Virus record (IMG/VR): IMGVR_UViG_3300032288_004964
Span: 248,001 to 312,000 of that record
Length of the DNA stretch: 64,000 bases
Reading direction: 5' to 3' (one strand)
Of the stretch, positions 6,407 through 35,133 are shown in pieces (the first letter of the stretch is position 1; the number at the start of each line of letters is the position of its first letter). A program made the translations under genes and the position numbers. The notes below the pieces were generated by a model. That model had not been told where the DNA came from. It did no database searches and saw nothing but the letters and a program-made list of their open reading frames with translations.

Positions 6407-6502
6407 TGCGGGGTAGAGAAGTGGTCAACTCGCTAGGCTCATTTTAGACTATCTAATGAAGAAATAACCTAGAGATCACAGGTTCGAATCCTGTCCCCGC
6501 TA
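6407..6502 (+). tRNA. Initiator-type tRNA-Met(CAT) with 23-nt insertion in the anticodon loop
   Basis: TGCGGGG/CCCCGCT acceptor with 1:72 mismatch; CTAGG-CTCAT[23 nt]AA-CCTAG; GGTTCGAATCC. Confidence 0.8.
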
Positions 6503-6656: not shown

Positions 6657-6737
6657 ATGAACACAACTACTAACATATTGTCTTATTATTATGAGGAGAA
6701 AAACCCTTCTATCAGACAAGTATTGTTTGTGTTGTAA
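6657..6737 (+). CDS. Attenuator leader peptide 1 (Tyr/Glu sensor) MNTTTNILSYYYEEKNPSIRQVLFVL
   Basis: TAT TAT TAT GAG GAG run; followed by a terminator and Tyr/Glu tRNAs. Confidence 0.85.
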   Translation: MNTTTNILSYYYEEKNPSIRQVLFVL

Positions 6738-6758
6738 TTATTATTATAATATTAAATG

Positions 6759-6795
6759 AAACCCAGTCTGATTATCAGACTGGGTTTTTTGTTTT
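6759..6795 (+). terminator. Attenuator terminator 1
   Basis: aaacccagtctga-tta-tcagactgggttt plus U tract; ATCAGAC at 6711-6717 in the leader is complementary to the 5' arm. Confidence 0.85.
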
Positions 6796-6911: not shown

Positions 6912-6983
6912 GGTCTTGTCGACTAATGGTTAGGTCAACACCCTTTCAAGGTGTAGATGCGGGTTCGATCCCCGTCAAGACTA
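6912..6983 (+). tRNA. tRNA-Glu(TTC)
   Basis: Cloverleaf; acacc-CTTTCAA-ggtgt. Confidence 0.9.
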
Positions 6984-6992
6984 CAAATAAAT

Positions 6993-7078
6993 GCTACGGT
7001 ATGCAAACCGGAATAAGCGACCAGACTTTCAATCTGGACATCGAAAGATGTGTGCGGGTTCGAGCCCCGTCCGTAGTA
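6993..7078 (+). tRNA. tRNA with TTC (Glu) anticodon and long variable arm
   Basis: ccaga-CTTTCAA-tctgg; acatc-gaaa-gatgt V-arm; A73. Confidence 0.8.
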
Positions 7079-7081
7079 CAA

Positions 7082-7223
7082 AAATATCAGGAGTACCTGT
7101 CGTAGAAAGTTAATCACTTTCCCTGATATTTATAAAACTCAATGAAGTAAGTGACTTTAGGTAGTACCGACAGGAGGGTGAATTTGATTAAGTTCTTTGG
7201 GGTTCGAATCCCACCATTGAGTT
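7082..7223 (+). ncRNA. Hairpin plus tRNA-like element (acceptor stem and T-arm) with potential mutual pairing
   Basis: actcaatg/cattgagt stem; GGTTCGAATCC; cctgtcg(7096)/cgacagg(7168) complementarity. Confidence 0.45.
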
Positions 7224-7228
7224 GTTTT

Positions 7229-7312
7229 GGGAATGCGCCAACGTTGGAGAGTTGGGCTAGTCTGTAAAACTAGTGGCTTATGCCTGAGTGAGTTCGATTC
7301 TCACCATTCCCA
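7229..7312 (+). tRNA. tRNA-Tyr(GTA)
   Basis: ctagt-CTGTAAA-actag; long V-arm. Confidence 0.85.
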
Positions 7313-7316
7313 CAAG

Positions 7317-7541
7317 ATGAAGATAATAGATTTTTTAATACAAGTAGGTACCTTCAAAAGTAAAGGTGAGGCAATTAGAGCTGTAAAAAACAAAATGACT
7401 TTGAAGATAAGAGGTACTGATGAAAGTAATGTTCAATATAAAGATATCATAATAGATGAAAGTAATATAAATGGTTATATCTATATTGAAAATGAAAAGG
7501 TTTATGTAACAAATTTTGATATAAAAGATTTGGTAGATTGA
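7317..7541 (+). CDS. Small S4-like RNA-binding-domain protein
   Basis: True start likely ATG 7317 after the tRNA; IIDFLIQVGTFKSKGEAIRAV resembles the S4 motif of the TyrRS C-terminus. Confidence 0.55.
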   Translation: MKIIDFLIQVGTFKSKGEAIRAVKNKMTLKIRGTDESNVQYKDIIIDESNINGYIYIENEKVYVTNFDIKDLVD

Positions 7542-7578
7542 ACTTTTTTATTTATCTTTGTAAAACAAATATAAAAAT

Positions 7579-7651
7579 GCACCGTTAGTGAAGCGGCTAA
7601 CACGTCTCCCTTTCACGGAGAAGATCATCGGTTCGAACCCGATACGGTGTA
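7579..7651 (+). tRNA. tRNA-Glu(TTC)
   Basis: tctcc-CTTTCAC-ggaga; own TTTG...TATCTTTG promoter at ~7529-7562. Confidence 0.9.
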
Positions 7652-7659
7652 CAAATTTT

Positions 7660-7739
7660 GGGAGTATCGCATAGCGGCAATTGCAGTAGACTGTAAATCT
7701 ACCCTTTCGAGTTCGAAGGTTCGAGTCCTTCTACTCCCA
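7660..7739 (+). tRNA. tRNA-Tyr(GTA)
   Basis: gtaga-CTGTAAA-tctac. Confidence 0.9.
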
Positions 7740-7743
7740 CAAA

Positions 7744-8373
7744 TTATATATCAGAGTCACTCCTAAGTAATCCACACTTTTGACACTCTTCAAATCCATC
7801 ACCATCTTTATCTCCCCAAATGTGTTCACAATTTCTGTGTTCAAAATATTCATCAATATCCCCATCACCATCAGTATCATATCCGTCATTAACACCATCA
7901 CCATCTTCATCAACTTCAACCTTTTCAAAAACAGGTTTTGACTCGACTGGAATATTAACTACTTCAGTTTTTCTTTTCATTGATGATGTATAGTCAGGCA
8001 TAACTGTTTCTTTCTTTGGTTCATCCGGAAACTCACCTGCTTTTGAAAGTGACATTCCATCCTCTTCATCAACTTTTTGAATTAACATTTTATCTCTATC
8101 TTCTGAATTAAATCAATAATCAATAACTTTATTTAAATTACCAACAAAAGCACCTAATAAAATTAATAACATTTCTTTCCAGTCCTCTCCAATTGATATT
8201 CCAAAAAATACCGCTGAATTAATACCAACAATTATAAGTATAAATATACCTAATACTATGGCGGTTATTCTCCATCTATTTGCCTGCATTTGCTGAAGCA
8301 TATAATAAAATCTATTTTTATCTTCAACTTTTATATAATCTGTTTTACTACTAAAGAATTTTCCCAATCCCAT
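7744..8373 (-). CDS. Two-TM membrane protein with acidic DxDGDG C-terminus, interrupted by an in-frame TGA at 8113-8115
   Basis: ORFs 8113..8373 and 7744..8088 share a frame and are joined by TGA-TTT-AAT-TCA-GAA-GAT-AGA-GAT-AAA. Confidence 0.6.
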
Positions 8374-8476
8374 AATTAATTTTTATTTTTATATATTAAT
8401 TTAAAAATAAAAAAAATAAAAAAATTATTAGGGGGAGTGAAACTTTTTATATATATTTGTATAAGAGATTAAAACT

Positions 8477-8560
8477 ATGAAAAATTTACATAACATATCA
8501 ATAGCGATTATAGCGGGCGGCGCGGGGAGCGACTGTCATTGGCTGAGTTATGTGTTGTAA
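8477..8560 (+). CDS. Attenuator leader peptide 2 (Ile/Ala/Gly sensor) MKNLHNISIAIIAGGAGSDCHWLSYVL
   Basis: ATA/GCG/GGC/GGG codon run; followed by a terminator and Ile/Gly/Ala tRNAs. Confidence 0.85.
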   Translation: MKNLHNISIAIIAGGAGSDCHWLSYVL

Positions 8561-8587
8561 ATAATAAATATATTTATAATAATATTG

Positions 8588-8618
8588 AAACCCAGTCACA
8601 AAATGACTGGGTTTTTTT
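8588..8618 (+). terminator. Attenuator terminator 2
   Basis: aaacccagtca-caaaa-tgactgggttt plus U tract; tggctgagtt (8540-8549) can pair with the 5' arm. Confidence 0.85.
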
Positions 8619-8627
8619 AATTTATAT

Positions 8628-8701
8628 AGGTGAGTAGCTTAGATGGTAAAAGCATGTGTCTTATACACACAAGATAGTGGGATCGTTACCCACCTCACCT
8701 A
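8628..8701 (+). tRNA. tRNA-Ile(TAT)
   Basis: tgtgt-CTTATAC-acaca; T-loop ATCGTTA. Confidence 0.85.
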
Positions 8702-8929
8702 CTGAAAAAAATAAAAATGAAAGGAAAAATGAAAAGTTGAAATTGAATTGTTGGTTTATTTATAGATGTGTTAATAGTAATATCTATTTTCACCGTGTTA
8801 AATAAGAATATTAAATGTCGTATTTATGAAAATGAATATGAGACATGGGTACCTGACTTAAACGGTAACATACAACGTAAAGAAACTAAAACAATTGTTA
8901 TTAACTTCTTAAGAAGATTAGGATAACAA

Positions 8930-9003
8930 GCAATAGTGGTGTTAATGGTTTAGCACATCTGACTTCCAATCAGAAGGTGTCGGTTCGAATCCGGTCTAAT
9001 GCA
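8930..9003 (+). tRNA. tRNA-Gly(TCC)
   Basis: tctga-CTTCCAA-tcaga. Confidence 0.85.
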
Positions 9004-9050
9004 CAAAGTGAGAAAACACTTAAAAACCATCCCACCAGGATGTAAAAATC

Positions 9051-9133
9051 GCGGGTGTAGTATAGTGGAGGCGAAAGCCGTATTATATCGGTCTTCCAAA
9101 CCGAAGATGTGAGTTCGATTCTCATCACCCGCT
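9051..9133 (+). tRNA. tRNA-Gly(TCC) with D-loop hairpin insertion
   Basis: tcggt-CTTCCAA-accga; ggc-gaaa-gcc in the D-loop. Confidence 0.85.
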
Positions 9134-9146
9134 CAAATAATGTAAT

Positions 9147-9222
9147 GGGGTTACATGTACCAAGGCTTAGGCGAGACTGCTTTGCAAGCAATCTGTGGTG
9201 GGTTCGATTCCCACTAGCTCCA
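9147..9222 (+). tRNA. tRNA-Ala(TGC)
   Basis: TTTGCAA loop; G3.U70 pair; atypical D arm. Confidence 0.75.
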
Positions 9223-9234
9223 CAAAAAAAACAA

Positions 9235-9307
9235 GCGAAAGTAGCTCAGTTGGTAGAGCGTAACCTTGCCAAGGTTAAGGTCGCGGGTTCGAGACCCGTC
9301 TTTCTCT
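9235..9307 (+). tRNA. tRNA-Gly(GCC)
   Basis: taacc-TTGCCAA-ggtta. Confidence 0.85.
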
Positions 9308-9308
9308 C

Positions 9309-9452
9309 AAGATAGTAGCAATGTAAGAGTGTTACTTCGTATTTCAAACGACTAGTTCAGGTTCGAATCCTGGGTTCCGCTCAAAATAATATAAGCGGAA
9401 TTAGTGTAACGGCAGCACAGTAAAAACACACTCAGCAAATTTTCTCTATCTT
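9309..9452 (+). ncRNA. YrlA/Y-RNA-like permuted tRNA mimic
   Basis: Long closing stem (agatag/ctatct, gagtgt/acactc, ttact/agtaa) enclosing T-arm, loop-closed acceptor stem, then D-arm. Confidence 0.6.
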
Positions 9453-9456
9453 ATTA

Positions 9457-9529
9457 GGGCCAGATGCCAACGGCAGGTCAACTCGCTTGCACCGAGATTG
9501 TTTGGGTTCGATTCCCACTGTGTCCACCA
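9457..9529 (+). tRNA. Atypical tRNA-Ala(TGC), encoded CCA
   Basis: ctcg-CTTGCAC-cgag; G3.U70; bulged acceptor stem. Confidence 0.65.
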
Positions 9530-9559
9530 ATGTATTTGGACAAGAACCTAAATTAAAAT

Positions 9560-9590
9560 AAAAAAAGCCTCATTTGATGAGGCTTTTTTT
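9560..9590. terminator. Bidirectional intrinsic terminator
   Basis: aaaaaaagcctcat-ttg-atgaggcttttttt between convergent units. Confidence 0.8.
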
Positions 9591-9592
9591 AT

Positions 9593-11056
9593 TTAAGATA
9601 TTTTAATTTTCATTTTTGTTCCGGTGTCTATTTTATCACAGGATAAATCAAATTTGTGTTCTTTTAATATGGCAAAACAGATATTTAGTCCAAGCCCGGA
9701 TTCACTTTCTTTCTCTACTGAATAAGAAGATAATATTTTATCAAATTTATTTTGAGTCAATCCTATACCATTGTCTTCAATAATTAAATATTCATTCTCC
9801 ATGTATATTTTAACTTTTTTACTTTCGCTTTTATTATATTTTAAACCATTTTTTATTAGATTATCAATAGCGTTCCAGAAAAGTGTCTCATTTACTATAG
9901 CATTTGGTAAATCTTCGACTTCTACTTGTGTAGAATATGATGTTGTGAGAATACATCTATTTAATAAATCTTTTAAATTTACATCAGTTTTATCTAACAC
10001 TACATTTTGTTTAACAAGATTGGTAAACTCATATACCGACTTATAAACTTTTTGAGTATGATTAAGTCCTTCTTTAATCATTTTAACTGGTCCATCAATT
10101 TTTAATTTTTGTAATTCTTCTGGAGTAACTCTTTTCTCTAAAGAGTTTATACCTCGAGGAATATAAGTATTTATACCAGAGTGCATATCATGTCTAATAA
10201 TTCTAGCGGCATGTTCTAAATAAGTATTCTTTTTATTAATATCTCTTAGTTGTTTTTCAATTTCTTTATCTTGTACTTTAATTGTTTTTCTTTGTAAAAG
10301 AGCAAGTATAGAAAGCCCCATAATTGAAGCACATATAATTGCCCATATTAAATAAGTTCTTAATTTTGATTTTTGAACTTCTAAATCTTTATTTTCTACT
10401 TGTAACTCTCCTTTAACAACAGTAAGATCTATTATGTCTTTTTCTTTAGATAATGTTTTAATTGTACCTGTCTTAGAATCTATTACTTGTTGATTAGCAT
10501 TAGCCTTTTGTAGTGAATCTTTTTCAAATATTAATTTTTTAATTTTGTTATCAATTTCTTCAGCTACCTTTTTTAAGTCTTCTTTTGATAAATTATCATA
10601 AGATTGTGGAAGATTTTTAATAAAATTTTGGTCATTCTTAACTTGATTAGCTTCATTTTCATCTAATTCTGCAGGAGTAGGTGCGGGTACCATTATCTCT
10701 TTGATAAGATAAATATACTCTTTAGAAGCAGATATTTGTGATTCAATAGGACGTATTTTTGAGTTAATAGACTTGTTGAACCACCAATTAGCTCCCTCAA
10801 ATTCTTTTCTCGAATAAAGAGCCAATCCTATTTCTAAACTAATTGATTTTTCTTCAGGTGATAATTCCGAATTTTCGCTATCTCTGATTTTATAGATATC
10901 AATTTTATCCATAAGATTATTAATGTAATTATCATCTGGGCAAATAGGAACTCCTTGGTCCCAAACAGATTCAACACTTTCTGTTGTATCTATCTTAGTT
11001 TGTGAATAAGAGGCCAAACAGATAAGGCTAAATAATATTAAGAAATATTTTTTCAT
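9593..11056 (-). CDS. Membrane sensor histidine kinase
   Basis: Signal peptide, TM helix, H-box RHDMHSG, N-box NLIKNGLKY, G1 DNGIG, G2 GLGL. Confidence 0.85.
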   Translation of the reverse strand: MKKYFLILFSLICLASYSQTKIDTTESVESVWDQGVPICPDDNYINNLMDKIDIYKIRDSENSELSPEEKSISLEIGLALYSRKEFEGANWWFNKSINSKIRPIESQISASKEYIYLIKEIMVPAPTPAELDENEANQVKNDQNFIKNLPQSYDNLSKEDLKKVAEEIDNKIKKLIFEKDSLQKANANQQVIDSKTGTIKTLSKEKDIIDLTVVKGELQVENKDLEVQKSKLRTYLIWAIICASIMGLSILALLQRKTIKVQDKEIEKQLRDINKKNTYLEHAARIIRHDMHSGINTYIPRGINSLEKRVTPEELQKLKIDGPVKMIKEGLNHTQKVYKSVYEFTNLVKQNVVLDKTDVNLKDLLNRCILTTSYSTQVEVEDLPNAIVNETLFWNAIDNLIKNGLKYNKSESKKVKIYMENEYLIIEDNGIGLTQNKFDKILSSYSVEKESESGLGLNICFAILKEHKFDLSCDKIDTGTKMKIKIS

Positions 11057-13890: not shown

Positions 13891-14001
13891 ATGACAACAA
13901 TTAATTTAAATATGAACATGAATACACTGACAGTGGTGAATAATACGTTATGTATTAGACCTTGTGAGGGTTTTGATCTATTTAAAGGATTTGTCAATTA
14001 A
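13891..14001 (+). CDS. Attenuator leader peptide 3 MTTINLNMNMNTLTVVNNTLCIRPCEGFDLFKGFVN
   Basis: First 23 codons use only M,T,I,N,L,V,C,R, the amino acids of the downstream tRNA cluster. Confidence 0.85.
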   Translation: MTTINLNMNMNTLTVVNNTLCIRPCEGFDLFKGFVN

Positions 14002-14029
14002 TGTAACAAATTTTTAATAAAAGATACTC

Positions 14030-14062
14030 AAAACCCTCAGTCAAAAACTGAGGGTTTTTTTA
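14030..14062 (+). terminator. Attenuator terminator 3
   Basis: aaaaccctcagt-caaaa-actgagggtttt; perfect 12-bp antiterminator tgagggttttga(13965)/tcaaaaccctca(14028). Confidence 0.9.
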
Positions 14063-14075: not shown

Positions 14076-14148
14076 GGACTGGAAGCTAGTATGGTACAGC
14101 TGCGGCCTGTTAAGCCGAGGATAGTGGGATCGTTACCCACCCAGTCCG
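14076..14148 (+). tRNA. tRNA-Asn(GTT)
   Basis: cggc-CTGTTAA-gccg; T-loop ATCGTTA. Confidence 0.8.
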
Positions 14149-14164
14149 CAAAAAGAAATAAAAA

Positions 14165-14243
14165 CGGTGCGTACCGAGCCACACTGATAATGTGGATATT
14201 CGTAATGGTGTTGCAAATGTAGGTTCAAATCCTATCGTACCGA
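14165..14243 (+). tRNA. D-armless tRNA-like gene with GAT (Ile) anticodon and long variable region
   Basis: cggtgcg/cgtaccg; ccaca-CTGATAA-tgtgg; GGTTCAAATCC. Confidence 0.55.
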
Positions 14244-14249
14244 CAAAAT

Positions 14250-14322
14250 GGTTCCTTCGTTCAACTGGACAGGACATCGGTCTTCTAAACCGAGGATATG
14301 GGTTCGAATCCCGTAGGGACTA
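14250..14322 (+). tRNA. tRNA-Arg(TCT)
   Basis: tcggt-CTTCTAA-accga. Confidence 0.9.
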
Positions 14323-14384
14323 CTGAGAGAGACCGTTTATAGTTTTTAACAGGACACAAGAGTGGAAGCGTAGAAAACTAAAAT

Positions 14385-14468
14385 GCCGGAGTGGCGAAAT
14401 GGTTAATACGCGCTAGCCTTAGAAGCTAGTGTCTATATGACGTGTGGGTTCGAGTCCCACCTCCGGTA
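14385..14468 (+). tRNA. tRNA-Leu(TAG)
   Basis: ctagc-CTTAGAA-gctag; long V-arm. Confidence 0.9.
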
Positions 14469-14500
14469 CTGAAGTGAAACTAAAGTTCACTACTAAAAAT

Positions 14501-14586
14501 TACTGTGTTGCCGTAGTGGCCGAACGGTCCAGACTGTTAATCTGGTGACGAATAGTCCAACGTAGGTTCGAATCCTACCACAGTAG
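14501..14586 (+). tRNA. tRNA-Asn(GTT) with long variable arm
   Basis: ccaga-CTGTTAA-tctgg; G73. Confidence 0.8.
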
Positions 14587-14591
14587 CAAAA

Positions 14592-14664
14592 GCCCCCGTA
14601 GCTTAATCGGGAAAGCACTTGTTTTACATACAAGATAGAGTCGGATCGTAACCGGCCGGGGGTA
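14592..14664 (+). tRNA. tRNA-Val(TAC)
   Basis: cttgt-TTTACAT-acaag; T-loop ATCGTAA. Confidence 0.85.
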
Positions 14665-14671
14665 CAAATAT

Positions 14672-14744
14672 TGTCAGTTAGCTCATTTGGTAGAGCACTT
14701 GTCTGATACACAAGAGGTGGTGGGATCGTAACCCGCACTGACAA
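14672..14744 (+). tRNA. tRNA-Ile(GAT)
   Basis: cttgt-CTGATAC-acaag; T-loop ATCGTAA. Confidence 0.85.
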
Positions 14745-14750
14745 CAAAAT

Positions 14751-14833
14751 GGTACTGTGGCCGAGCGGTGTCGAAAGACGAGAGGCAGTAGTCTGCAAAA
14801 CTACTCACACTGGTTCGAATCCAGTCAGTACCT
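14751..14833 (+). tRNA. tRNA-Cys(GCA) with D-loop hairpin insertion
   Basis: gtagt-CTGCAAA-actac; U73; gtc-gaaa-gac in the D-loop. Confidence 0.85.
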
Positions 14834-14845
14834 CAAAAAGAGTTC

Positions 14846-14917
14846 GCTCTCTAAGCATTAATGGTGATGCGCTAGTCTTGTAAACTAGATAAATCGGATC
14901 GTTACCGGTAGAGAGCT
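14846..14917 (+). tRNA. tRNA-Thr(TGT)
   Basis: ctagt-CTTGTAA-actag; T-loop ATCGTTA. Confidence 0.85.
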
Positions 14918-14922
14918 CAAAT

Positions 14923-15068
14923 CGGTAGGACCCTATATTCTGTGGTAACTTCTAGAGAAGCCACAAGATGAATCGGTCTGGGTTAAAAACCAAACTTGGT
15001 TATTTGATATTCTAGAAATCATCATTTAATTAAGATTGGGAAGGTAGGTTCGAATCCTACCCTACTGT
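14923..15068 (+). ncRNA. 146-nt tRNA-like RNA (acceptor stem and T-arm enclosing a multi-hairpin core)
   Basis: cggtagg/cctactg; gtagg-TTCGAAT-cctac; no recognisable anticodon arm. Confidence 0.5.
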
Positions 15069-15075
15069 CAAATAT

Positions 15076-15147
15076 TGTTCTGTAGCTCAATGGGAGAGCA
15101 CTTCCTTGACATGGAAGAGGTAGTCGGATCGTTACCGACCAGAACAA
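15076..15147 (+). tRNA. tRNA-Val(GAC)
   Basis: cttcc-TTGACAT-ggaag; T-loop ATCGTTA. Confidence 0.85.
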
Positions 15148-15148
15148 C

Positions 15149-15267
15149 TTAATGGATGGTGATTGAAAGAGTTACTTCGTTTAATGGAAAAACAATTGAC
15201 TTCTAATCAGTGCACGGTGGTTCGATTCCACCAGTATAAAACCTCTTTCTACCTTTTCCTCCATTAA
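15149..15267 (+). ncRNA. Y-RNA-like element carrying D, anticodon (TCT, Arg) and T arms on a long closing stem
   Basis: ttaatgga/tccattaa and gaaagag/ctctttc stems; shares GTTACTTCG...AGTA(T)AAAAC with the 9309 element. Confidence 0.55.
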
Positions 15268-15269
15268 AT

Positions 15270-15349
15270 GCTGATGTGGCACAGTGGCGACTGCACCAAC
15301 CTTGTAAGTTGGAACACAAACATCGGGGGTTCGAGTCCCTCCATCAGCT
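15270..15349 (+). tRNA. tRNA-Thr(TGT) with extended variable region
   Basis: ccaac-CTTGTAA-gttgg. Confidence 0.8.
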
Positions 15350-15356
15350 CAAAAAT

Positions 15357-15443
15357 GCTTCTGTGGCGAAATTGGCAGCACGCGAGGGACTTAAAATCCC
15401 TTGGACCGGAAAGTCCGTATCGGTTCGAGTCCGATCAGAAGTA
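15357..15443 (+). tRNA. tRNA-Leu(TAA)
   Basis: aggga-CTTAAAA-tccct. Confidence 0.9.
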
Positions 15444-15449
15444 CTAAAA

Positions 15450-15521
15450 TGCGATATAGCTTAATGGAAGAGCGGCTCCAGACATAGGGAGTTAGTCTTG
15501 GTTCGATTCCAGGTATCGCGA
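15450..15521 (+). tRNA. tRNA-Met-like with 8-nt anticodon loop (AGA-CAT-AG)
   Basis: gctcc-AGACATAG-ggagt; normal D and T arms. Confidence 0.6.
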
Positions 15522-15526
15522 CAAAT

Positions 15527-15596
15527 GGCGTGGCTTAGTGGAAAAGAGCAGTCTCTCATAAGGACTGATAAGTGGGTTCGAACCCCATACACGCTA
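15527..15596 (+). tRNA. Atypical tRNA with CAT anticodon (Met or Ile2)
   Basis: agtct-CTCATAA-ggact; short acceptor/D connector. Confidence 0.6.
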
Positions 15597-16247
15597 CTAA
15601 TTAATTTTATTAGGATATCCTAACTTAGCCTTATTAACTATGTTTATATGTTCAACATTTTTTGGGAATAATCTTGGATGATAATTATCATATTGGTCTA
15701 AAAACTTAAAATCTTCTTTTTTAAGTTTCATTCCATCAAATCTATTTAAGAAGTTTATAAATGATTGTAAAGATTCATCTACTAAACCAAATACAGTATT
15801 ACTTCTATCAAAATTAGAACCATAAGAAGTATATTGAATTACTTTTATTTTATTCGGTTCTTCAATACTAAATTCACAGGTCATGGCATCACCATATGTT
15901 ATATCAATAGTTAATGTTATATTACCATCTTTGTCATCTTTAGCAAAATAAATATCAAATTCTAAAGTATCGGGTGTTCCCCATATCTCTCCTGATTCTT
16001 TACTACCAAGTGGTGTAGAAGCATAAGTTATCTGAACCATGTCAGAGTGTAACATTATATTATCTTTCTTAAATTTATAAAGATTATTGTGATAATTTAT
16101 TGTAATGAATTCTGATAGTTCGTTTTCCCATCTCTTATCATAGATAGTATTTAAAGTATTAGTCTTACTATCTATATTAGGTTTTATATTACCATTAGCT
16201 TTAATTGTAGCTTCAATATCTTCATTAAATCTTCTTAAATATTTCAT
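15597..16247 (-). CDS. Hypothetical protein, paralog of 22092..22820
   Basis: Shared PDxLxFDI...IDxTYGDxMxxEFxIxxPNK motif; MKYLRRFNE start. Confidence 0.75.
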   Translation of the reverse strand: MKYLRRFNEDIEATIKANGNIKPNIDSKTNTLNTIYDKRWENELSEFITINYHNNLYKFKKDNIMLHSDMVQITYASTPLGSKESGEIWGTPDTLEFDIYFAKDDKDGNITLTIDITYGDAMTCEFSIEEPNKIKVIQYTSYGSNFDRSNTVFGLVDESLQSFINFLNRFDGMKLKKEDFKFLDQYDNYHPRLFPKNVEHINIVNKAKLGYPNKIN

Positions 16248-16302
16248 ATTGTATATATTTGTTTTTTAGAATTCTTTTCTTATATTTGTATAAAATAAAA
16301 AT

Positions 16303-16443
16303 ATGTTAGGACTTTGTAAAAAACTGCAAGATAAAACTGGAATTGACCGTTTTTGGTTTAGATTACTTTTTATAATTTGGTTCATCGGTATTGGTGGATG
16401 GGCTATTATTTGGTATATTCTACTCTCGTTTATTATTGATTAA
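16303..16443 (+). CDS. PspC-domain small membrane protein
   Basis: MLGLCKKLQDKTGIDRFWFRLLFIIW...IIWYILL resembles the PspC GVCxGL...GID...RL pattern. Confidence 0.65.
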   Translation: MLGLCKKLQDKTGIDRFWFRLLFIIWFIGIGGWAIIWYILLSFIID

Positions 16444-16464: not shown

Positions 16465-17922
16465 ATGAAAAATATTGTAACAAGAATTGCTCCTTCTCCA
16501 ACTGGTAAGTTTGTCCATTTAGGAAACTTAAGAACTTTACTTTATAATTACTTCCTTGCTAAAAGACACGGTGGTAAATTCCTTGTGCGTTTAGAAGATA
16601 CTGACCGTGACCGTTATACTCCAGAATTTCTACAATATTTTAAAGATACTTGTGATTGGTTAGGAATTGTACCTGATAATTCTTTTTGGAATCCAGATCC
16701 ATCAATTGGTTCATTTATTCAATCAGAAAGAGATTATTCTGACAAAGTTAAATTTCTATTAGATAATGGATTGGCTTATTATGCTTTTGATACAAAAGAT
16801 GATTTAGATATTTTAAAGTCTAAAGGTCTTAAATATGATGCAACCACTCGTATGTCTATGAATAACTCATTGACAAGACCTGATACTGATATTAATTCTG
16901 TTCCTTATGTTATTCGTTTTGCTGTTACACCAGATGTAGATATTACTTTTACAGATGCAATCTTAGGTGATATTACTATTAACACAAATACTTTAGATGA
17001 TAAGGTTTTAATTAAATCCAATGGTATTGGTTCTTATCATCTTTGTAATGTTTGTGATGATCATGATATGAAAGTTACTCATGTTCTTCGTGGACAAGAA
17101 TGGGTAAATTCTACTCCTTTTCATATTCTTATGTATAAAGCATTTGGTTGGGATATTCCTACTTTTGCTCACTTACCTCTAATTATGAATCCTGATGGTA
17201 AAGGTAAACTAGCAAAAAGAACGGCTGCTAAATATGGTATTCCTATTGCGCCACTTGGTTATACTGATGATAATGGAGTCTATATCCCAGGTTGGAAAGA
17301 TTTAGGTTATGATCCTAAGGCATTTATCAATTCACTTGCTTTAATTGGTTGGAATCCTGGTAATGATGTTGAAGTTATGTCCTTAGATGATATGATTAAT
17401 TCATTTTCATTAGACAGAGTTCATAAATCAGGTGCTCGTTTTGATATTGATAAAGCAAAATGGATTAACTCACACTATTTAAAGGCTACTGATAATAAAG
17501 ATTTAATTCCTTTTGTTAATATTGTGGATAATAGATATTCTAATGATAAATTAGATAAGATTATTACTTTAGCAAAAGATAGAGCTACTTTTAAGACAGA
17601 CTTAAATAATATTGTTGATTTGTTTTTTGATACACCTGTTATTACAGACTATTCAAAAATTGATGATAACTATATAAAAGTAATGTCTAGTTTTGTTGAT
17701 AATATTGACTCTGTTGATTTCAATGATACTGATAGTATTAAATTAACAATTTCTTCTATCTGTGATGGGTTTGGAATTAAGATTGGTAAAGTAATGCCTG
17801 GTTTGAGAATTGCTTTAGTTGGTGGAATAAGTGGACCAGATTTAATGACCACGATGTCAATTCTTGGTAAAGACCAAGTAAAATTGAGAATTCTTAACTC
17901 TACAAAAACAGTTACTGTATAA
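16465..17922 (+). CDS. gltX: Glutamyl-tRNA synthetase
   Basis: RIAPSPTG, HLGN (HIGH), RLEDTD, DDHDM-VTHVLRG, KLAKR. Confidence 0.92.
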   Translation: MKNIVTRIAPSPTGKFVHLGNLRTLLYNYFLAKRHGGKFLVRLEDTDRDRYTPEFLQYFKDTCDWLGIVPDNSFWNPDPSIGSFIQSERDYSDKVKFLLDNGLAYYAFDTKDDLDILKSKGLKYDATTRMSMNNSLTRPDTDINSVPYVIRFAVTPDVDITFTDAILGDITINTNTLDDKVLIKSNGIGSYHLCNVCDDHDMKVTHVLRGQEWVNSTPFHILMYKAFGWDIPTFAHLPLIMNPDGKGKLAKRTAAKYGIPIAPLGYTDDNGVYIPGWKDLGYDPKAFINSLALIGWNPGNDVEVMSLDDMINSFSLDRVHKSGARFDIDKAKWINSHYLKATDNKDLIPFVNIVDNRYSNDKLDKIITLAKDRATFKTDLNNIVDLFFDTPVITDYSKIDDNYIKVMSSFVDNIDSVDFNDTDSIKLTISSICDGFGIKIGKVMPGLRIALVGGISGPDLMTTMSILGKDQVKLRILNSTKTVTV

Positions 17923-22987: not shown

Positions 22988-23086
22988 ATGAAAAACTTAA
23001 ACTTAAATATCGTTAACCCGCAACCTCAAGTTGTAATCGATCAGGATCCTGATACGATAGGGGCTAACTATGTGGTTTTAAGTTAA
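22988..23086 (+). CDS. Attenuator leader peptide 4 (Pro/Gln/Asp sensor) MKNLNLNIVNPQPQVVIDQDPDTIGANYVVLS
   Basis: PQPQ..DQDPD run; followed by a terminator and Asp/Pro/Gln tRNAs. Confidence 0.85.
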   Translation: MKNLNLNIVNPQPQVVIDQDPDTIGANYVVLS

Positions 23087-23110
23087 AGAATAATATTAAC
23101 TATGAAACGT

Positions 23111-23150
23111 AACCCAGTTAGTCGAAAGATTAACTGGGTTTTTTGTTTTT
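23111..23150 (+). terminator. Attenuator terminator 4
   Basis: aacccagttagtc-gaaa-gattaactgggtt plus U tract; ggctaact (23062-23069) pairs with agttagtc. Confidence 0.85.
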
Positions 23151-23223: not shown

Positions 23224-23297
23224 GGTTCGTTAGTAGAGTTGGTTACAATATCGCACTGTCACTGCGAAGGTCACGGGTTCGAATCCCGTACGAACCG
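23224..23297 (+). tRNA. tRNA-Asp(GTC)
   Basis: tcgca-CTGTCAC-tgcga. Confidence 0.9.
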
Positions 23298-23302
23298 CAA
23301 AA

Positions 23303-23374
23303 GGTCTTGTCGTCCAATGGTAGGATAACCCGTTGTCTGCGGGAAGGTTGTGGGTTCGAATCCCATCAGGACCG
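23303..23374 (+). tRNA. tRNA-Asp(GTC)
   Basis: cccg-TTGTCTG-cggg; G73. Confidence 0.8.
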
Positions 23375-23383
23375 CTAAAATTT

Positions 23384-23456
23384 CGGGGTGTAGCGCAGTT
23401 GGTAGCGCGCCTGGTTTGGGACCAGGAGGTCGTCAGTTCGAGCCTGGCCACTCCGA
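23384..23456 (+). tRNA. tRNA-Pro(TGG)
   Basis: cctgg-TTTGGGA-ccagg. Confidence 0.9.
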
Positions 23457-23469
23457 CAAAAAATTAAAA

Positions 23470-23554
23470 CGAGATGTAGCCTAGAGGTTTCCGTATGGAT
23501 AAAGGCACTTGGTTTGGGACCAAGACGACGCAGGTTCGAATCCTGCCATCTCGA
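23470..23554 (+). tRNA. tRNA-Pro(TGG) with D-loop hairpin insertion
   Basis: cttgg-TTTGGGA-ccaag; tcc-gtat-gga in the D-loop. Confidence 0.85.
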
Positions 23555-23585
23555 CAAAGAAAAAAAATATTAATAAATAGAAATT

Positions 23586-23639
23586 ATGAGAACAACAACA
23601 CAATACCAACAACAACAACAAATTAATCCAACAGATTGA
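23586..23639 (+). CDS. Attenuator leader peptide 5 (Gln sensor) MRTTTQYQQQQQINPTD
   Basis: Six CAA codons; followed by a terminator, two tRNA-Gln and glnS. Confidence 0.9.
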   Translation: MRTTTQYQQQQQINPTD

Positions 23640-23667
23640 TAATGGTATCGTATTGTTTAAACTTTAC

Positions 23668-23702
23668 AAACCCTACTCAATCTGATTGAGTAGGGTTTTT
23701 TT
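23668..23702 (+). terminator. Attenuator terminator 5
   Basis: aaaccctactcaat-ctg-attgagtagggttt plus U tract; cagattga(23632)/tcaatctg(23677) antiterminator. Confidence 0.9.
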
Positions 23703-23704
23703 AT

Positions 23705-23778
23705 TGTCCGGTGGCGAAATTGGTAGACGCACTAAGCTTTGACCTTAGTTTTTGTAGGTTCGAACCCTACCCGGACAG
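23705..23778 (+). tRNA. tRNA-Gln(TTG)
   Basis: ctaag-CTTTGAC-cttag. Confidence 0.85.
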
Positions 23779-23785
23779 CAACAAT

Positions 23786-23857
23786 TGGAAAATAGTATAA
23801 TGGTTATTATTTCTGACTTTGAATCAGAAGATACAGGTTCGATCCCTGTTTTTCCAA
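23786..23857 (+). tRNA. tRNA-Gln(TTG)
   Basis: tctga-CTTTGAA-tcaga. Confidence 0.85.
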
Positions 23858-23876
23858 CTAAAAAAATATAAAAATT

Positions 23877-25511
23877 ATGAATTTCATAGAAGAAAAAATA
23901 TTAGAAAAAGGAAATCTCGATAAGTTAAAACTTCGTTTTCCACCAGAACCAAATGGGGCTATACTAAACGATGGTAGAGTTGTCGGTGGTCTTCACTTAG
24001 GACATGCTAAATCCATTATACTAAATTTTGGATTAGCAGAAAAGTATAATGCTACATGTGTGTTAAGGTTTGATGATACAAATCCAACTACTGAAAGAAA
24101 AGAGTTTGTAGATTCAATGATTGAGGATATCAAATGGCTTGGTTATACTCCAAGTGAAATCAGATACACATCTGATTATTTTGATTTTCTTTATGAATGT
24201 GCTGTTACTTTAATTAAGAAAGGATTAGCTTATGTTGATGATTCAACATCTGAAGAAATTGCTAACTTAAAAGGAACTCCAACTTCAGTTGGTAAAGACT
24301 CACCTTATAAATCTAGAAGTATAGAAGAAAACTTAGACTTATTTAATAGAATGAGATTAGGTGAATTCTATGAAGGTTCTAAAATCTTGAGAGCCAATAT
24401 TGATATGACTTCTCCTAATATGATTTTAAGAGATCCGGTTCTTTACAGAATAATATCTAAGTCACATCACAGAACTGGTGATACTTGGAAGATTTATCCA
24501 ATGTATGACTTTGCTCATCCACTTTCAGATTATAAAGAAGGTATCACTGATTCCCTTTGTACTTTAGAATTTGAAGTTCATAGACCTTTATATATGTGGG
24601 TCTTAGAAAATTGTGATTTAGAAAATTCTTTACCAGAAGAAACTGAGTTTGCTCGTTTGAACATTGACTATACGGTTATGTCAAAGAGAAAACTAAAAAG
24701 ATTAGTTGAAGAAGGATTTGTTGATGGGTGGAATGATCCAAGAATGCCAACTATTTCTGGTTTAAGAAGAAGAGGTTTTACTCCAAACGCTATTAAAGAT
24801 TTCTGCGATAGAATTTCTGTTACCAGAAAAGAATCAGTTGTTTCTTATTTGCTTTTAGAAGAATGTTTAAGAACTGATTTGAATATAGTTACCAATAGAT
24901 TAATGGGTGTTATGGATCCAGTTAAGTTAGTTATTACTAATTGGGATAGCGGAACTGAAATGGTTGAAGTTGAAAATAATCCTGGCGATGAAAGTGCTGG
25001 AGTGAGAATGATTCCTTTTAGTGGTGAATTATTTATTGAAAGAGAAGATTTCAGAGAAGAAGCCAATAAAAAATTTCATAGATTGAAATTAGGTGGAGAA
25101 GTAAGACTAAAAGGAGCTTATGTTATTATGGCTAACGAAGTTATCAAAGATGAATTTGGGGAAATCACTGAGATCAGATGTACTTATGATCCTTTAACAA
25201 GATCGGGTATGACTTTTGAAAGAAAGATTAAAGGAACTATTCACTGGGTATCTGCTGAACACGGAGTTAGAATGGATGTAAATGAATATGATAGATTGTT
25301 CAATGATGAATCACCAGATAAAAATGAAGATGATTTTATCAATTATATCAACCCAGATTCACTTATAATTAATGATAAGGCAATCTTTGAACCTCACGTT
25401 TTAAACGTCAAGGCACCAGTTCAAATGATGAGAAAGGGGTATTATATTTTAGATACTGACGGTAAAAGTTTCAATAAAACGGTAAGTTTGAAAGAAGGTT
25501 GGGTAGGTTAA
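23877..25511 (+). CDS. glnS: Glutaminyl-tRNA synthetase
   Basis: RFPPEPNG, HLGH, RFDDTNP, YPMYDFAH, MSKRK, GWNDPRMPT. Confidence 0.95.
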   Translation: MNFIEEKILEKGNLDKLKLRFPPEPNGAILNDGRVVGGLHLGHAKSIILNFGLAEKYNATCVLRFDDTNPTTERKEFVDSMIEDIKWLGYTPSEIRYTSDYFDFLYECAVTLIKKGLAYVDDSTSEEIANLKGTPTSVGKDSPYKSRSIEENLDLFNRMRLGEFYEGSKILRANIDMTSPNMILRDPVLYRIISKSHHRTGDTWKIYPMYDFAHPLSDYKEGITDSLCTLEFEVHRPLYMWVLENCDLENSLPEETEFARLNIDYTVMSKRKLKRLVEEGFVDGWNDPRMPTISGLRRRGFTPNAIKDFCDRISVTRKESVVSYLLLEECLRTDLNIVTNRLMGVMDPVKLVITNWDSGTEMVEVENNPGDESAGVRMIPFSGELFIEREDFREEANKKFHRLKLGGEVRLKGAYVIMANEVIKDEFGEITEIRCTYDPLTRSGMTFERKIKGTIHWVSAEHGVRMDVNEYDRLFNDESPDKNEDDFINYINPDSLIINDKAIFEPHVLNVKAPVQMMRKGYYILDTDGKSFNKTVSLKEGWVG

Positions 25512-33610: not shown

Positions 33611-33695
33611 GAGGAAGTTCCAGAGTGGTCAAATGGGGCTGTGTAGTAACACGGCTGACTTTTAGTCTTCAGAGGTTCAAATCCTTTCTTTCTCA
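33611..33695 (+). tRNA. tRNA-Tyr-like with 8-nt anticodon loop
   Basis: gctgt-GTAGTAAC-acggc; long V-arm; A73. Confidence 0.6.
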
Positions 33696-33785
33696 CAAAA
33701 AATATTTTGAAAAACATTTGGTAGAATAAAAAAAAGTTTCTATCTTTGTAAAACAAAATTAAAAGGTATTATATAAAAAACATAT

Positions 33786-33861
33786 TGCGGGAGGGTGAAA
33801 CGGAAAATCATTCCAGGCTCATAACCTGACGAGATACTTGGTTCGACTCCAAGTCCCGCTA
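33786..33861 (+). tRNA. Initiator-type tRNA-Met(CAT)
   Basis: cagg-CTCATAA-cctg; 1:72 mismatch. Confidence 0.75.
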
Positions 33862-33895
33862 CTAAAAAAAGTTTTTATAAATTTTTTACAAAAGA

Positions 33896-33979: not shown

Positions 33980-34840
33980 TTACAGAAATAATGACTTCGG
34001 TCATTAAAGTAAGTAGGGCGGCTTATAGTCCATAAATAATCTCTGAAAGGAGGATAAAGTGATCACAAATGCTAAATGTGATTGCGGCTTGACCGAAAGG
34101 TTGAGCTCGGGTAAGCGAGTGGAATACCATTATTCCTGAGTAGCCGAGGGTAACACTGTAGGCGAAATGGTTTAGTGATTAGGCGATGTAGATCGTCTGA
34201 TTGACTTCGGAAGAAGAATAGGAATAATCCATAGGAATCTTTGCAAGAAGTGGTGACCCACCAGTTATCATCATTGCGAATTCCAACTTGAGAGGTATCT
34301 CAAAGTCGAAAGACAATTTAGTGTACAGGTGGTGCTGTTACTAAACACTAAACTGACTACCAAGTCGGTGACCTTGCTAAGGTGAGGTCTGGTGAAGATA
34401 TCTTAAAGAGTTGTGATGGAGGCATCACACGGAGTAGTCTAGTATTCTTGAGGCCAAAAGCTTTGGGAACTAAGAGATAACCACTACTTCGACAAAATCT
34501 ACAGCACTAAAATTTACTTTTTGACGTAAAAATTAAAACTTAAATCGAAAGTGTTATCTAGTTACTGATAGAAAGGTACCTACTTAGTTATGGGTTGTCC
34601 ATAGCCACATAAGTCCGAAAGACTGGTGTGATTTTACCGAAAAGCTTATAGGGGGTCGAATCCCGAACTAGCCTGCGAGGGTTGGATAAGTAGAGTAAGT
34701 AGAGAGTATTCAGTGACTCAAGGGGTGGTTAGTCTAACTAACCGGTACTGACAAGATACCATTCAAAAGATGGTGGATAGATTTGGGAATACATAATCCA
34801 AACAAAGACTTGTCATATTAAGATGTAATCTCAGTCTTTT
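33980..34840 (+). ncRNA. Large structured ncRNA, GOLLD-like
   Basis: ~850 nt with no ORF in the track, higher GC than flanks, many GNRA/UUCG-capped hairpins, flanked by tRNAs; family name is from size and context only. Confidence 0.6.
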
Positions 34841-34844
34841 ATTT

Positions 34845-34920
34845 GGTCAGTTCGTCTAGCGGCATTCAGGACGGATATCTATTCAGATATCAAACATTGG
34901 TTCGAATCCAATACTGACTA
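34845..34920 (+). tRNA. tRNA-Glu-like with 8-nt anticodon loop
   Basis: gatat-CTATTCAG-atatc; normal D and T arms. Confidence 0.6.
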
Positions 34921-35099: not shown

Positions 35100-35133
35100 C
35101 AGAAATCACGGTCTTTTGACCGTCTACGAAAAC

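Follow-up and report, generated by a model that had tools for sequence, protein, structure and literature searches.

A block of tRNA genes in a huge bacteriophage is preceded by a short leader reading frame and an intrinsic transcription terminator, an arrangement most probably representing a ribosome-mediated attenuator, such that these tRNAs are probably made only when ribosomes read the matching codons slowly. The analysis concerns a stretch of 64,000 nucleotides (hereafter the window), positions 248,001 to 312,000 of the virus record IMGVR_UViG_3300032288_004964. The unit of interest, denoted A2, occupies positions 8441-9594 and comprises, on the plus strand, a promoter-like motif, a 27-codon leader ORF with the core ISIAIIAGGAG, an intrinsic terminator, tRNA-Ile(UAU), three tRNA-Gly genes, two degenerate Ala(UGC)-like elements and a final terminator. 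It is one of five such units in the window (A1 to A5). The first-pass annotation, made from the sequence alone, had described an attenuator at this site with an Ile/Ala/Gly leader, unusually GC-rich codons and an antiterminator paired at 9 of 10 positions, and these observations are confirmed, except that the two genes it listed as Ala tRNAs are only tRNA-like. Its interpretation as an attenuator in front of the tRNA cluster is supported by every test that could be run, and its proposal that sensing occurs at the level of isoacceptors rather than amino acids is supported comparatively, with the caveats given below.

The leader ORF runs from the ATG at 8477 to the TAA at 8558-8560 and encodes MKNLHNISIAIIAGGAGSDCHWLSYVL. 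The promoter-like motif AACTTTTTATATATATTTGTA (8441-8461), which contains a TAnnTTTG element of the Bacteroidota -7 type, lies 15 nt upstream of the ATG. It is an exact match to a motif that occurs 15 times in the window against 3.9 expected, a number not reached in any of 100 shuffles, and the same motif is found 15-19 nt before the ATG of ordinary genes (25993 and 35212) and before attenuators A3 and A4. The ORF is thus placed to be translated. The control codons (8495-8527) are ATA, TCA, ATA, GCG, ATT, ATA, GCG, GGC, GGC, GCG and GGG, i.e., three ATA and one ATT, three GCG, two GGC and one GGG. In 44 long ORFs of the window (14,037 codons) GCG accounts for 3% of the Ala codons, GGC and GGG for 3% and 4% of the Gly codons, and ATA for 38% of the Ile codons. 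Given the amino acids, this codon set is therefore very improbable, and multiplication of the background frequencies yields about 1e-9. Ten of the 11 core codons encode Ile, Ala or Gly, against a background of 17% (about 2e-7).

The leader RNA has the classic four-region layout of an attenuator. Region 1 (8484-8507), which includes the motif AACATA, forms the 5′ strand of a 1:2 (anti-antiterminator) hairpin with region 2 (8540-8562), the whole of which pairs with region 1 and which ends at the stop codon. At the apex lies a small GC-rich hairpin (8516-8537) made of the Gly and Ala codons (GGCGGCGC / GGGGA / GCG.CUGUC), possibly a pause hairpin. Region 3 (8587-8598, GAAACCCAGTCA) and region 4 (8604-8618, TGACTGGGTTTT) are the 5′ and 3′ arms of the terminator (8587-8618), which has a hairpin energy of -16.7 kcal/mol, runs into seven T and ends 9 nt before tRNA-Ile. 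The segment TGGCTGAGTT (8540-8549) of region 2 pairs with AACCCAGTCA (8589-8598) of region 3 at 9 of 10 positions, with eight Watson-Crick pairs, one G-U pair and one A-C mismatch. In the minimum-free-energy fold the full leader adopts the 1:2 and 3:4 hairpins (-41.6 kcal/mol, z-score -4.9), whereas RNAfold predicts the 2:3 duplex once the 3′ arm of the terminator is removed. In the absence of a ribosome, however, the equilibrium fold at the decision point slightly favours the antiterminator (-26.3 against -24.4 kcal/mol for 1:2), so that termination without translation would rely on co-transcriptional kinetics. In a ribosome-footprint model the antiterminator forms with the A site on any codon up to GGG/AGC and is lost from GAC onward, which makes the control codons the last A-site positions that still leave region 2 free. 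Attenuators A1, A3 and A5 show the same boundary just after their control codons, but in this model A4 shows no clean switch, and in A3 a ribosome at the stop codon does not cover region 2.

A mechanism in which tRNA is sensed by direct RNA-tRNA contact, as in a T-box, or by another riboswitch, would follow the same regulatory logic, with tRNA status controlling a choice between terminator and antiterminator, but is very unlikely. No T-box or other riboswitch model matches, either at gathering thresholds over the whole window or at E <= 1 over 8400-9620, the leader (about 110 nt) is too short for Stem I plus an antiterminator bulge, and what is conserved is an ORF with amino-acid-level variation. 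The Rfam leader families (His_leader, Thr_leader, Leu_leader, Trp_leader, Phe_leader and others) do not match anywhere in the window either, with only chance-level hits (E of about 0.6-0.9) within 8477-8620.

Only tRNA and tRNA-like genes lie between 8628 and the closing terminator. The tRNA-Ile gene (8628-8702), with anticodon UAU reading AUA, is called by ARAGORN and by the Rfam tRNA model (61.1 bits). The first tRNA-Gly(UCC) (8930-9003) scores 59.9 bits with Rfam, while ARAGORN calls a shorter gene at 8939-9004. The second tRNA-Gly(UCC) (9051-9133) carries a 14-nt hairpin inserted in the D loop, scores 58.3 bits and folds as a cloverleaf (z-score -3.9). The tRNA-Gly(GCC) (9235-9307) is called by ARAGORN and by Rfam (63.6 bits). 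These four tRNA genes are solid. In contrast, the two Ala elements are degenerate. Element 9147-9225 has a UGC anticodon loop and a G3:U70 pair but an aberrant D arm; neither ARAGORN nor the Rfam tRNA model calls it, and its only database match is to the tRNA-like part of the tmRNA model (E = 9e-8, below gathering). Element 9458-9529, Ala(UGC)-like and ending in CCA, scores 29.0 bits, exactly at the Rfam threshold, with several broken pairs. A further fragment (9310-9385) with a T arm and an anticodon-like arm was read from the sequence and its predicted fold but is called by no program and is unassigned; a brief examination of 9310-9529 as a permuted tRNA did not resolve the region. Canonical Ala tRNAs do occur in the homologous clusters of relatives. 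The operon is closed by a bidirectional terminator (9556-9594) shared with the convergent gene 11056..9593. No promoter motif is found between 8462 and 11513, and hence none within the cluster, although an unrecognised promoter type is not excluded.

To examine whether this architecture is conserved, homologous leaders were collected. A pattern scan of viral contigs based on the leader itself (AACATATCA...GGCGCGGR) gave almost only chance hits, and was replaced by a pattern on tRNA-Ile(UAU), which also avoids selection on the attenuator. The 29 A2-type leaders thus retrieved through the tRNA sequence alone all contain an intact ORF of 20-28 codons starting at the aligned ATG, and the terminator stem is invariant. 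The antiterminator is 78% paired, against 20-44% in shifted registers. Fourteen cells carry compensatory changes, at two pairs, and the covariation score is 0.130 against 0.071 ± 0.010, a value reached in 0 of 500 shuffles. One of the two pairs involves a base in the terminator loop, so the terminator cannot explain it. The 1:2 hairpin is predicted in nearly all 29 homologues, with 72% of the cells paired against 27-45% in shifted registers. RNAalifold finds only the terminator, so the alternative pairings were tested by explicit pair counts. Taken one sequence at a time, the energy of the region 2/3 duplex is only marginally better than that of shuffles (median p = 0.056), because the zone is G-rich and region 3 is C-rich; the case rests on conserved register and covariation, and since the sequences are related the counts are not independent events. 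Covariation is stronger in A3-type homologues, which have entirely different region 2/3 sequences that still pair, with compensatory changes at five pairs.

The four sister units, all on the plus strand, have leaders that match their own tRNAs. Attenuator A1 (6657-6788), with leader MNTTTNILSYYYEEKNPSIRQVLFVL (YYYEE) and a terminator, is followed by Glu and Tyr tRNAs (6912-7740). Attenuator A3 (13891-14058), with leader MTTINLNMNMNTLTVVNNTLCIR... and a terminator, is followed by Asn, Arg, Leu, Val, Ile, Thr and Met tRNAs (14076-15599), the leader being composed of T/N/L/M/V/I/R. Attenuator A4 (22988-23140), with leader ...NPQPQVVIDQDPD... (PQPQ..DQDPD) and a terminator, is followed by two Asp, one Pro and one Ser tRNA (23224-23555). 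Attenuator A5 (23586-25511), with leader MRTTTQYQQQQQINPTD (QQQQQ) and a terminator at 23668-23698, is followed by two tRNA-Gln genes (23705-23858) and GlnRS (23877-25511), an order also found in LR745206 and LR756502. The true pairing of the five leaders with the five clusters is the single best of 120 permutations, at both the amino-acid and the codon level.

Further types are present in related huge phages, i.e., LR756502 and LR745206, the only two related genomes among GenBank phages, and many metagenome contigs. These include KHKHF before Phe/His/Lys, SRSRSS before Ser/Arg and, in a relative, an IIII leader before IleRS, while fused Glu/Tyr/Ile/Gly/Ala clusters carry fused leaders such as ...IEAIGYAYEAG.... 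Over 101 distinct leaders, 30.6% of the residues match the leader's own cluster, against 17.6 ± 0.9% when pairings are permuted, and 25.8% against 14.2 ± 0.8% at the codon level. These observations make it very unlikely that the hairpins are ordinary constitutive terminators or insulators, possibly overridden by a phage antitermination protein for temporal control, with the short ORFs as chance features of AT-rich DNA. Stems of the AAACCC...GGGTTT type are indeed the general terminator style of this genome, and a 27-codon ORF is not rare in a single frame of AT-rich DNA (an estimated 13% or so for 24 codons). However, five of five such terminators in the window have a promoter motif or a short ORF whose composition matches the tRNAs behind it, the ORF is kept in all 29 homologues, a base in the terminator loop covaries with the leader, and leaders change when cluster content changes.

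Codon choice follows the anticodons for Ile and Arg. Leaders of Ile(UAU) clusters contain 111 ATA and 59 ATY codons, whereas those of Ile(GAU) clusters contain 3 ATA and 12 ATY (p = 1e-3). Arg(UCU) clusters show 11 AGR and 3 CGN codons, against 3 AGR and 11 CGN for Arg(NCG) clusters (p = 7e-3). For Ala, isoacceptor-level sensing is supported in the sense that GCR makes up 97% of the Ala codons in A2-type leaders although GCT, at 66%, is the preferred Ala codon genome-wide. In addition, an LR756502 leader contains CAG codons where its cluster adds Gln(CUG). It is possible, though considerably less likely, that the attenuator senses amino-acid or overall aminoacyl-tRNA supply, and that the GC-rich codons serve to build RNA structure (a pause or apex hairpin and region 1) rather than to address anticodons. 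The string GGCGCGGG is conserved at the nucleotide level, and the third base of GGC is predicted to be paired in 48 of 53 cases, almost always in the small GC hairpin, so these codons may be structural. Motif AACATA in region 1 pairs with TATGTT near the stop codon, so that one ATA codon is structurally constrained. Some ATT/ATC codons occur in the core, and six relatives show only Ala(GGC) by ARAGORN yet use GCR codons. In contrast, the third base of GCG is mostly unpaired (35 of 52); pairing thus largely explains GGC but not GCG. The idea that leaders always use the wobble partner of the encoded anticodon, as the most sensitive codon, was also considered. It fits GCG, GGG, GTG, CTG and GAG, but fails for GGC, the Watson-Crick partner of GCC, and for ACA, CAA, AAA and TTA.

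Together these data lead to a model in which transcription starts just after the promoter-like motif and a ribosome loads on the leader. If aminoacyl-tRNAs reading ATA, GCG/GCA and GGN are scarce, the ribosome would dwell on codons 7-17, covering region 1 and leaving region 2 free to pair with region 3, so that the terminator cannot form and RNA polymerase runs on into the tRNA genes. If those tRNAs are plentiful, the ribosome would move on over region 2 towards the stop codon at its 3′ end, region 3 would pair with region 4, and transcription would end before the first tRNA. Because the products are the molecules being sensed, this would be a negative feedback loop that tops up particular decoding capacities on demand. 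The sequence anatomy, its conservation and covariation and the correspondence of codons with anticodons are established by the analysis, whereas translation of the leader, the coupling of transcription to translation, the response of termination to stalling and the resulting feedback are inferred; the phage is uncultured, its host is unknown, no transcript, ribosome-profiling or reporter data exist, and the dependence of termination on leader translation and charged tRNA was not measured. Within these bounds confidence in the model is high. The unit is one module of a family in this clade of huge phages, predicted by others to infect Bacteroidota, in which each tRNA cluster and some aminoacyl-tRNA synthetase (aaRS) genes carry a leader written in their own codons. 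The tRNA-Ile(UAU) pattern, searched for a bacterial origin or a clue to the host, has no match in 185,579 species genomes.

The closest known systems are the leader-peptide attenuators of the amino-acid biosynthetic operons (trp, his, leu, thr, ilvGMEDA and pheA of E. coli/Salmonella), which likewise combine a short ORF rich in regulatory codons, alternative 1:2, 2:3 and 3:4 hairpins, an intrinsic terminator and a stop codon placed such that a non-stalled ribosome blocks the antiterminator. Rare codons serve as sensors there too, as with CUA in the leu leader. The described members regulate amino-acid biosynthesis, transport or aaRS genes; in A2 the regulated genes are tRNA genes, no amino-acid pathway is involved, the element is encoded by a phage, and one leader multiplexes two to about eight amino acids that match a mixed tRNA cluster. 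In the pheST attenuator of E. coli a Phe-rich leader controls phenylalanyl-tRNA synthetase, a component of the translation apparatus, according to decoding of the cognate codons. The Q-rich leader before tRNA-Gln and GlnRS and the IIII leader before IleRS are direct analogues, but pheST encodes only the enzyme, whereas A2 contains no protein gene. T-box riboswitches also sense tRNA status with codon/anticodon specificity and decide between a terminator and an antiterminator, but bind uncharged tRNA directly, have no ORF and have a conserved Stem I and T-box sequence, none of which is present here. Phage tRNA clusters occur in T4, T5, KVP40, mycobacteriophages and huge phages, in the latter together with aaRS genes (Al-Shayeb et al. 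2020, PMC7162821). They are described as promoter-driven arrays without codon-specific regulation. The huge-phage paper contains neither 'attenuat' nor 'leader', and no description of leader peptides before tRNA genes was found in Rfam 15 or in full-text literature searches, which covered few subscription journals, so that this use of a classic bacterial switch appears undescribed.

Why phages carry tRNAs is a long-standing question, the candidate reasons being compensation for codon usage, replacement of tRNAs lost during infection and escape from tRNA-cleaving host defences. A sensor that releases a tRNA cluster only when its own codons are read slowly would mean that these tRNAs are conditional spare parts, deployed according to the state of the host's pool, and makes the question directly testable. 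In a more far-reaching reading, which is more likely than not, huge phages of this clade carry a modular set of codon-addressed sensors, each tRNA cluster and some aaRS genes being switched on only when ribosomes decode that cluster's own codons slowly, and would measure, isoacceptor by isoacceptor, what the infected cell's tRNA pool lacks, whether from codon-usage mismatch, tRNA decay or anticodon-nuclease defence, and replenish exactly that. This would be the first known case of tRNA genes under leader-peptide attenuation and of autogenous feedback on tRNA supply. Classical attenuation is thereby extended to RNA genes whose product is the ligand, with multiplexed leaders reporting on up to eight amino acids at once, and the leaders are natural, compact, codon-specific sensors of decoding capacity that could be used as reporters. 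As leaders change with cluster content, the family is also a ready-made comparative data set on how attenuators evolve. Attenuators were looked for on all translation genes: GluRS (16465-17922) has only a promoter and a small membrane-type ORF upstream, and the tRNAs next to the GOLLD RNA have promoters but no leader.

The window is AT-rich (25-32% GC over most of its length) and carries more than 30 tRNA genes in clusters on the + strand, a GOLLD RNA, and genes for GluRS and GlnRS. The GluRS is 100% identical to one on a 385-kb IMG/VR viral contig, and the closest GenBank relatives are the 642-kb and 634-kb 'uncultured phage' genomes LR756502 and LR745206. Al-Shayeb et al. 2020 (PMC7162821) predicted that their genomes above 634 kb, all within the Mahaphage clade, replicate in Bacteroidetes. 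The full-length GOLLD RNA (34430-34837, 270 bits) sits among tRNA and tRNA-like genes (33611-33862 and 34845-35110), each of which has its own TAnnTTTG-type promoter but no leader ORF or terminator, so that not all tRNAs of this phage are attenuated. Similarly, GluRS has no leader-terminator unit; between a promoter motif and this gene lies only a small ORF (16293-16443) with a hydrophobic, membrane-protein-like sequence (MLGLCKKLQDKTGIDRFWFRLLFIIWFIGIGGW...).

The leader ORF described in the first-pass annotation proved to be exact. From ATG 8477 to TAA 8560 it encodes MKNLHNISIAIIAGGAGSDCHWLSYVL, with ATA used three times, ATT once, GCG three times, GGC twice and GGG once. In the 14,037 codons of the long ORFs of the window, GCG, GGC and GGG each account for 3-4% of their synonymous families, and the codon choice in the leader is therefore far from chance. 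The ORF is followed by a strong intrinsic terminator (stem 8587-8615, seven T, -16.7 kcal/mol), and tRNA-Ile(UAU) begins at 8628, only 9 nt after the T tract. Next come Gly(UCC), a second Gly(UCC) with a 14-nt insertion in the D loop, and Gly(GCC). The two Ala tRNAs that had been assigned to the cluster are degenerate elements with UGC anticodon loops, 9147-9225 (which has G3:U70) and 9458-9529, and their decayed appearance is a weak point of the interpretation given below. One further tRNA-like fragment is unassigned. This T-arm-containing element (window 9310-9401) has its 3' acceptor strand GTTCCGC (9374-9380) complementary to GCGGAAT at 9395-9401, which lies downstream instead of upstream, an arrangement reminiscent of a circularly permuted tRNA gene, although it could also represent two decayed genes. 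Several tRNA genes of the window carry insertions (9051-9133, 6993-7079, 14501-14587, 15270-15350 and 6407-6502); whether these are removed or tolerated is unknown. One example is the 14-nt GGCGAAAGCC hairpin in the D loop of Gly(UCC), and others are 81-96-nt genes for tRNAs that normally lack a long variable arm. A bidirectional terminator at 9556-9594 closes the unit.

Upstream of the leader, positions 8441-8461 match exactly a motif (AACTTTTnnnnTATATTTGTA, containing TAnnTTTG) that occurs 15 times in the window against 3.9 expected, and that sits 15-19 nt before the start codons of ordinary genes as well as before this leader. No copy lies inside the cluster. On the other strand, a gene interrupted by an in-frame TGA (8373..7744) diverges from the promoter, while an HATPase_c protein gene (11056..9593) converges on the closing terminator. 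The interrupted gene comprises two ORFs (8373..8113 and 8088..7744) in the same frame, separated by a single TGA at 8110-8112, and is either a broken gene or a read-through/recoding site; neither piece matches a Pfam family.

The whole leader RNA folds into two elements (-41.6 kcal/mol, z-score -4.9). The first is a long hairpin in which 8484-8507 (region 1, including AACATA and ATAGCG) pairs with 8540-8562 (region 2, which ends at the stop codon), with a small GC hairpin built from the Gly/Ala codons at its apex. The second is the terminator, formed by regions 3 and 4. If region 4 is left out, region 2 (TGGCTGAGTT) pairs with region 3 (AACCCAGTCA) at 9 of 10 positions, in agreement with the antiterminator pairing proposed in the first-pass annotation. 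Together these pairings constitute the classical 1:2 / 2:3 / 3:4 layout, although the equilibrium fold without a ribosome slightly favours the antiterminator, which is a further weak point. To examine the effect of a ribosome, a simple model was used in which 28 nt around the A site are masked and the RNA made up to the terminator loop is folded. In this model the 2:3 antiterminator forms with the ribosome on any codon up to GGG/AGC and is lost from GAC onward, and the I/A/G run therefore occupies the last positions from which a stalled ribosome still permits read-through. In three other leaders of the window, described below, the same boundary falls just after YYYEE(K) (A1), after the Q run (A5) and between ...CIR and P (A3). 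Two other weak points are that leader A4 shows no clean switch in the model, and that in A3 a ribosome at the stop codon does not cover region 2. 

The leader at 8477 (A2) is one of a family. Every terminator in the window that precedes a tRNA cluster is itself preceded by a short ORF written in the amino acids of that cluster. In A1 the leader MNTTTNILSYYYEE... is followed by Glu and Tyr tRNAs, in A3 the leader MTTINLNMNMNTLTVVNNTLCIR... by Asn, Arg, Leu, Val, Ile, Thr and Met tRNAs, and in A4 the leader ...NPQPQVVIDQDPD... by Asp, Asp, Pro and Ser tRNAs. Within the A1 cluster a promoter-like motif (7542-7562, 3 mismatches) lies just before tRNA-Glu 7579 and tRNA-Tyr 7660, and the last two tRNAs of that cluster may therefore also be expressed independently of the attenuator. 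In A5 (23586-25511) the leader MRTTTQYQQQQQ... is followed by two tRNA-Gln and then by GlnRS, whose ATG is 19 nt after the second tRNA. The order of Q-leader, tRNA-Gln and GlnRS recurs in both GenBank genomes (loci L233 and L234, in LR745206 and LR756502). Across these loci, a Gln-rich leader and terminator are followed by two to four tRNA-Gln genes and then by GlnRS 19-30 nt after the last tRNA, such that one attenuator would control both the tRNA and its synthetase. In LR756502, where the cluster includes Gln(CUG), the leader contains CAG codons.

Relatives add further types, including KHKHF..K..KWF followed by Phe, His and Lys tRNAs, with Trp in some, and SSRSRSS followed by Ser and Arg tRNAs. 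In LR745206 (locus L002, 35888-38243) an IIII leader, MNFNTIIIIRYSIPWSIPIG, and a terminator lie directly upstream of a phage IleRS (TIGR00392, 674 bits), which is a classical aaRS-type attenuator in a relative. Where the Glu/Tyr and Ile/Gly/Ala tRNAs form a single cluster, as in the metagenome and viral contigs L210, L232, L209, L226, L201, L218 and L040, the leader is a fusion of both codon sets (for example MRTIINIEAIGYAYEAG and MRTIINIEAIGYAYEAGS...). These are natural swaps that link leader content to cluster content.

In the window alone, the true pairing of the 5 leaders with the 5 clusters is the unique best of 120 permutations, at both amino-acid and codon level. The comparison was extended to 101 distinct leaders, for which the longest ORF ending near a tRNA-proximal terminator was chosen without regard to the match. 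In these leaders 30.6% of residues have a tRNA in their own cluster, against 17.6 +/- 0.9% for permuted pairings (maximum 21.0% in 2,000 permutations). The sequences are related, so these figures, like those at codon level, are descriptive and do not represent independent trials. At codon level, under standard wobble rules, the values are 25.8% against 14.2 +/- 0.8%.

To avoid selection on the attenuator itself, homologues were sought in viral and metagenome collections with a pattern taken from tRNA-Ile(UAU) only, which returned 74 loci. Twenty-eight candidate leaders lay directly upstream of the tRNA, one of which (L179) proved a false positive; the remaining 27, together with two A2-type leaders found earlier in the analysis (L001 and L169), gave an alignment of 29 rows. 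All 29 rows keep an ORF of 20-28 codons from the aligned ATG, and the terminator stem is invariant. Pairing between regions 2 and 3 holds in 78% of cells, against 20-44% when the partner is slid by 1-3 columns, and fourteen cells at two pairs carry compensatory changes. The covariation score is 0.130 against 0.071 +/- 0.010, a value reached by 0 of 500 shuffles. One of the two covarying positions (column 145) lies in the terminator loop, and the terminator therefore cannot explain its covariation with the leader. The 1:2 helix is paired in 72% of cells against 27-45%, and single-sequence folds predict it in nearly every homologue. In the sister A3 type, regions 2 and 3 have been rewritten together: TGAGGGTTTT pairs with AAAACCCTCA, GGTTCGGGTT with AACCCGAACC, and TCTAGGGGTT with AACCCCTAGA. 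This gives 5 compensated pairs, a count reached by 7 of 500 shuffles.

The leaders track anticodons, and not only amino acids. Clusters with Ile(UAU) have leaders with 111 ATA and 59 ATY codons, whereas clusters with Ile(GAU) have 3 ATA and 12 ATY (Fisher p = 1e-3). Likewise, Arg(UCU) clusters have 11 AGR and 3 CGN codons, whereas Arg(ACG/UCG/GCG) clusters have 3 AGR and 11 CGN (p = 7e-3), although CGN is only 10% of Arg codons genome-wide. In A2-type leaders Ala is 65% GCG and 32% GCA, both readable by UGC, and 3% GCY, while GCT is 66% of Ala codons in the genome. Gly is about 50% GGC, 21% GGG, 23% GGA and 8% GGT, against 3/4/36/57% in the genome. Structure explains part of this bias, since the third base of GGC is predicted to be paired, in the apex hairpin, in 48 of 53 cases; the third base of GCG, however, is unpaired in 35 of 52 cases. 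Two observations do not fit sensing of individual isoacceptors: six relatives show only Ala(GGC) by ARAGORN yet keep GCR codons, and some ATT/ATC codons sit in the core. It is concluded that the suggestion of isoacceptor-level sensing made in the first-pass annotation is well supported for Ile and Arg and plausible for Ala, and that the 'GC-rich' look of the leader mixes rare-codon sensing with a structural hairpin. Rare sensor codons have a precedent in the CUA codons of the leu leader.

The most likely mode of action is classical ribosome-mediated attenuation. In this view, slow decoding of codons 7-17 would hold the ribosome on region 1, so that region 2 pairs with region 3 and RNA polymerase reads into the tRNAs, whereas fast decoding would carry the ribosome over region 2 to the stop codon, so that regions 3 and 4 pair and transcription ends. 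Because the products are the sensed tRNAs, the loop would be self-limiting. The analysis itself demonstrates the anatomy of the sequence, its conservation and covariation, and the correspondence between codons and anticodons, while translation of the leader, coupling and the response itself are inferred from these.

The device would work like the trp, his, leu, thr, ilv and pheA attenuators and, most closely, like the pheST attenuator, and it fulfils each structural criterion that could be tested. It departs from these in what it regulates, namely only tRNA genes, with multiplexed leaders and in a phage. No Rfam leader family or T-box model matches it, and neither full-text literature searches, in a collection that omits most subscription journals, nor a term search of the huge-phage paper (PMC7162821) found a description of leader peptides ahead of tRNA genes. 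The main interest of the arrangement is that it turns the question of what phage tRNAs are for into a direct test. As to its origin, leaders of different specificity (window 6657, 8477, 13891, 22988 and 23586, and homologues) share their first codons (for example MKNL.N., MNT.TNI, MTTINLN and MRTTT) and the AAACCCAGT terminator core, which suggests that the modules arose by duplication followed by rewriting of the control codons.
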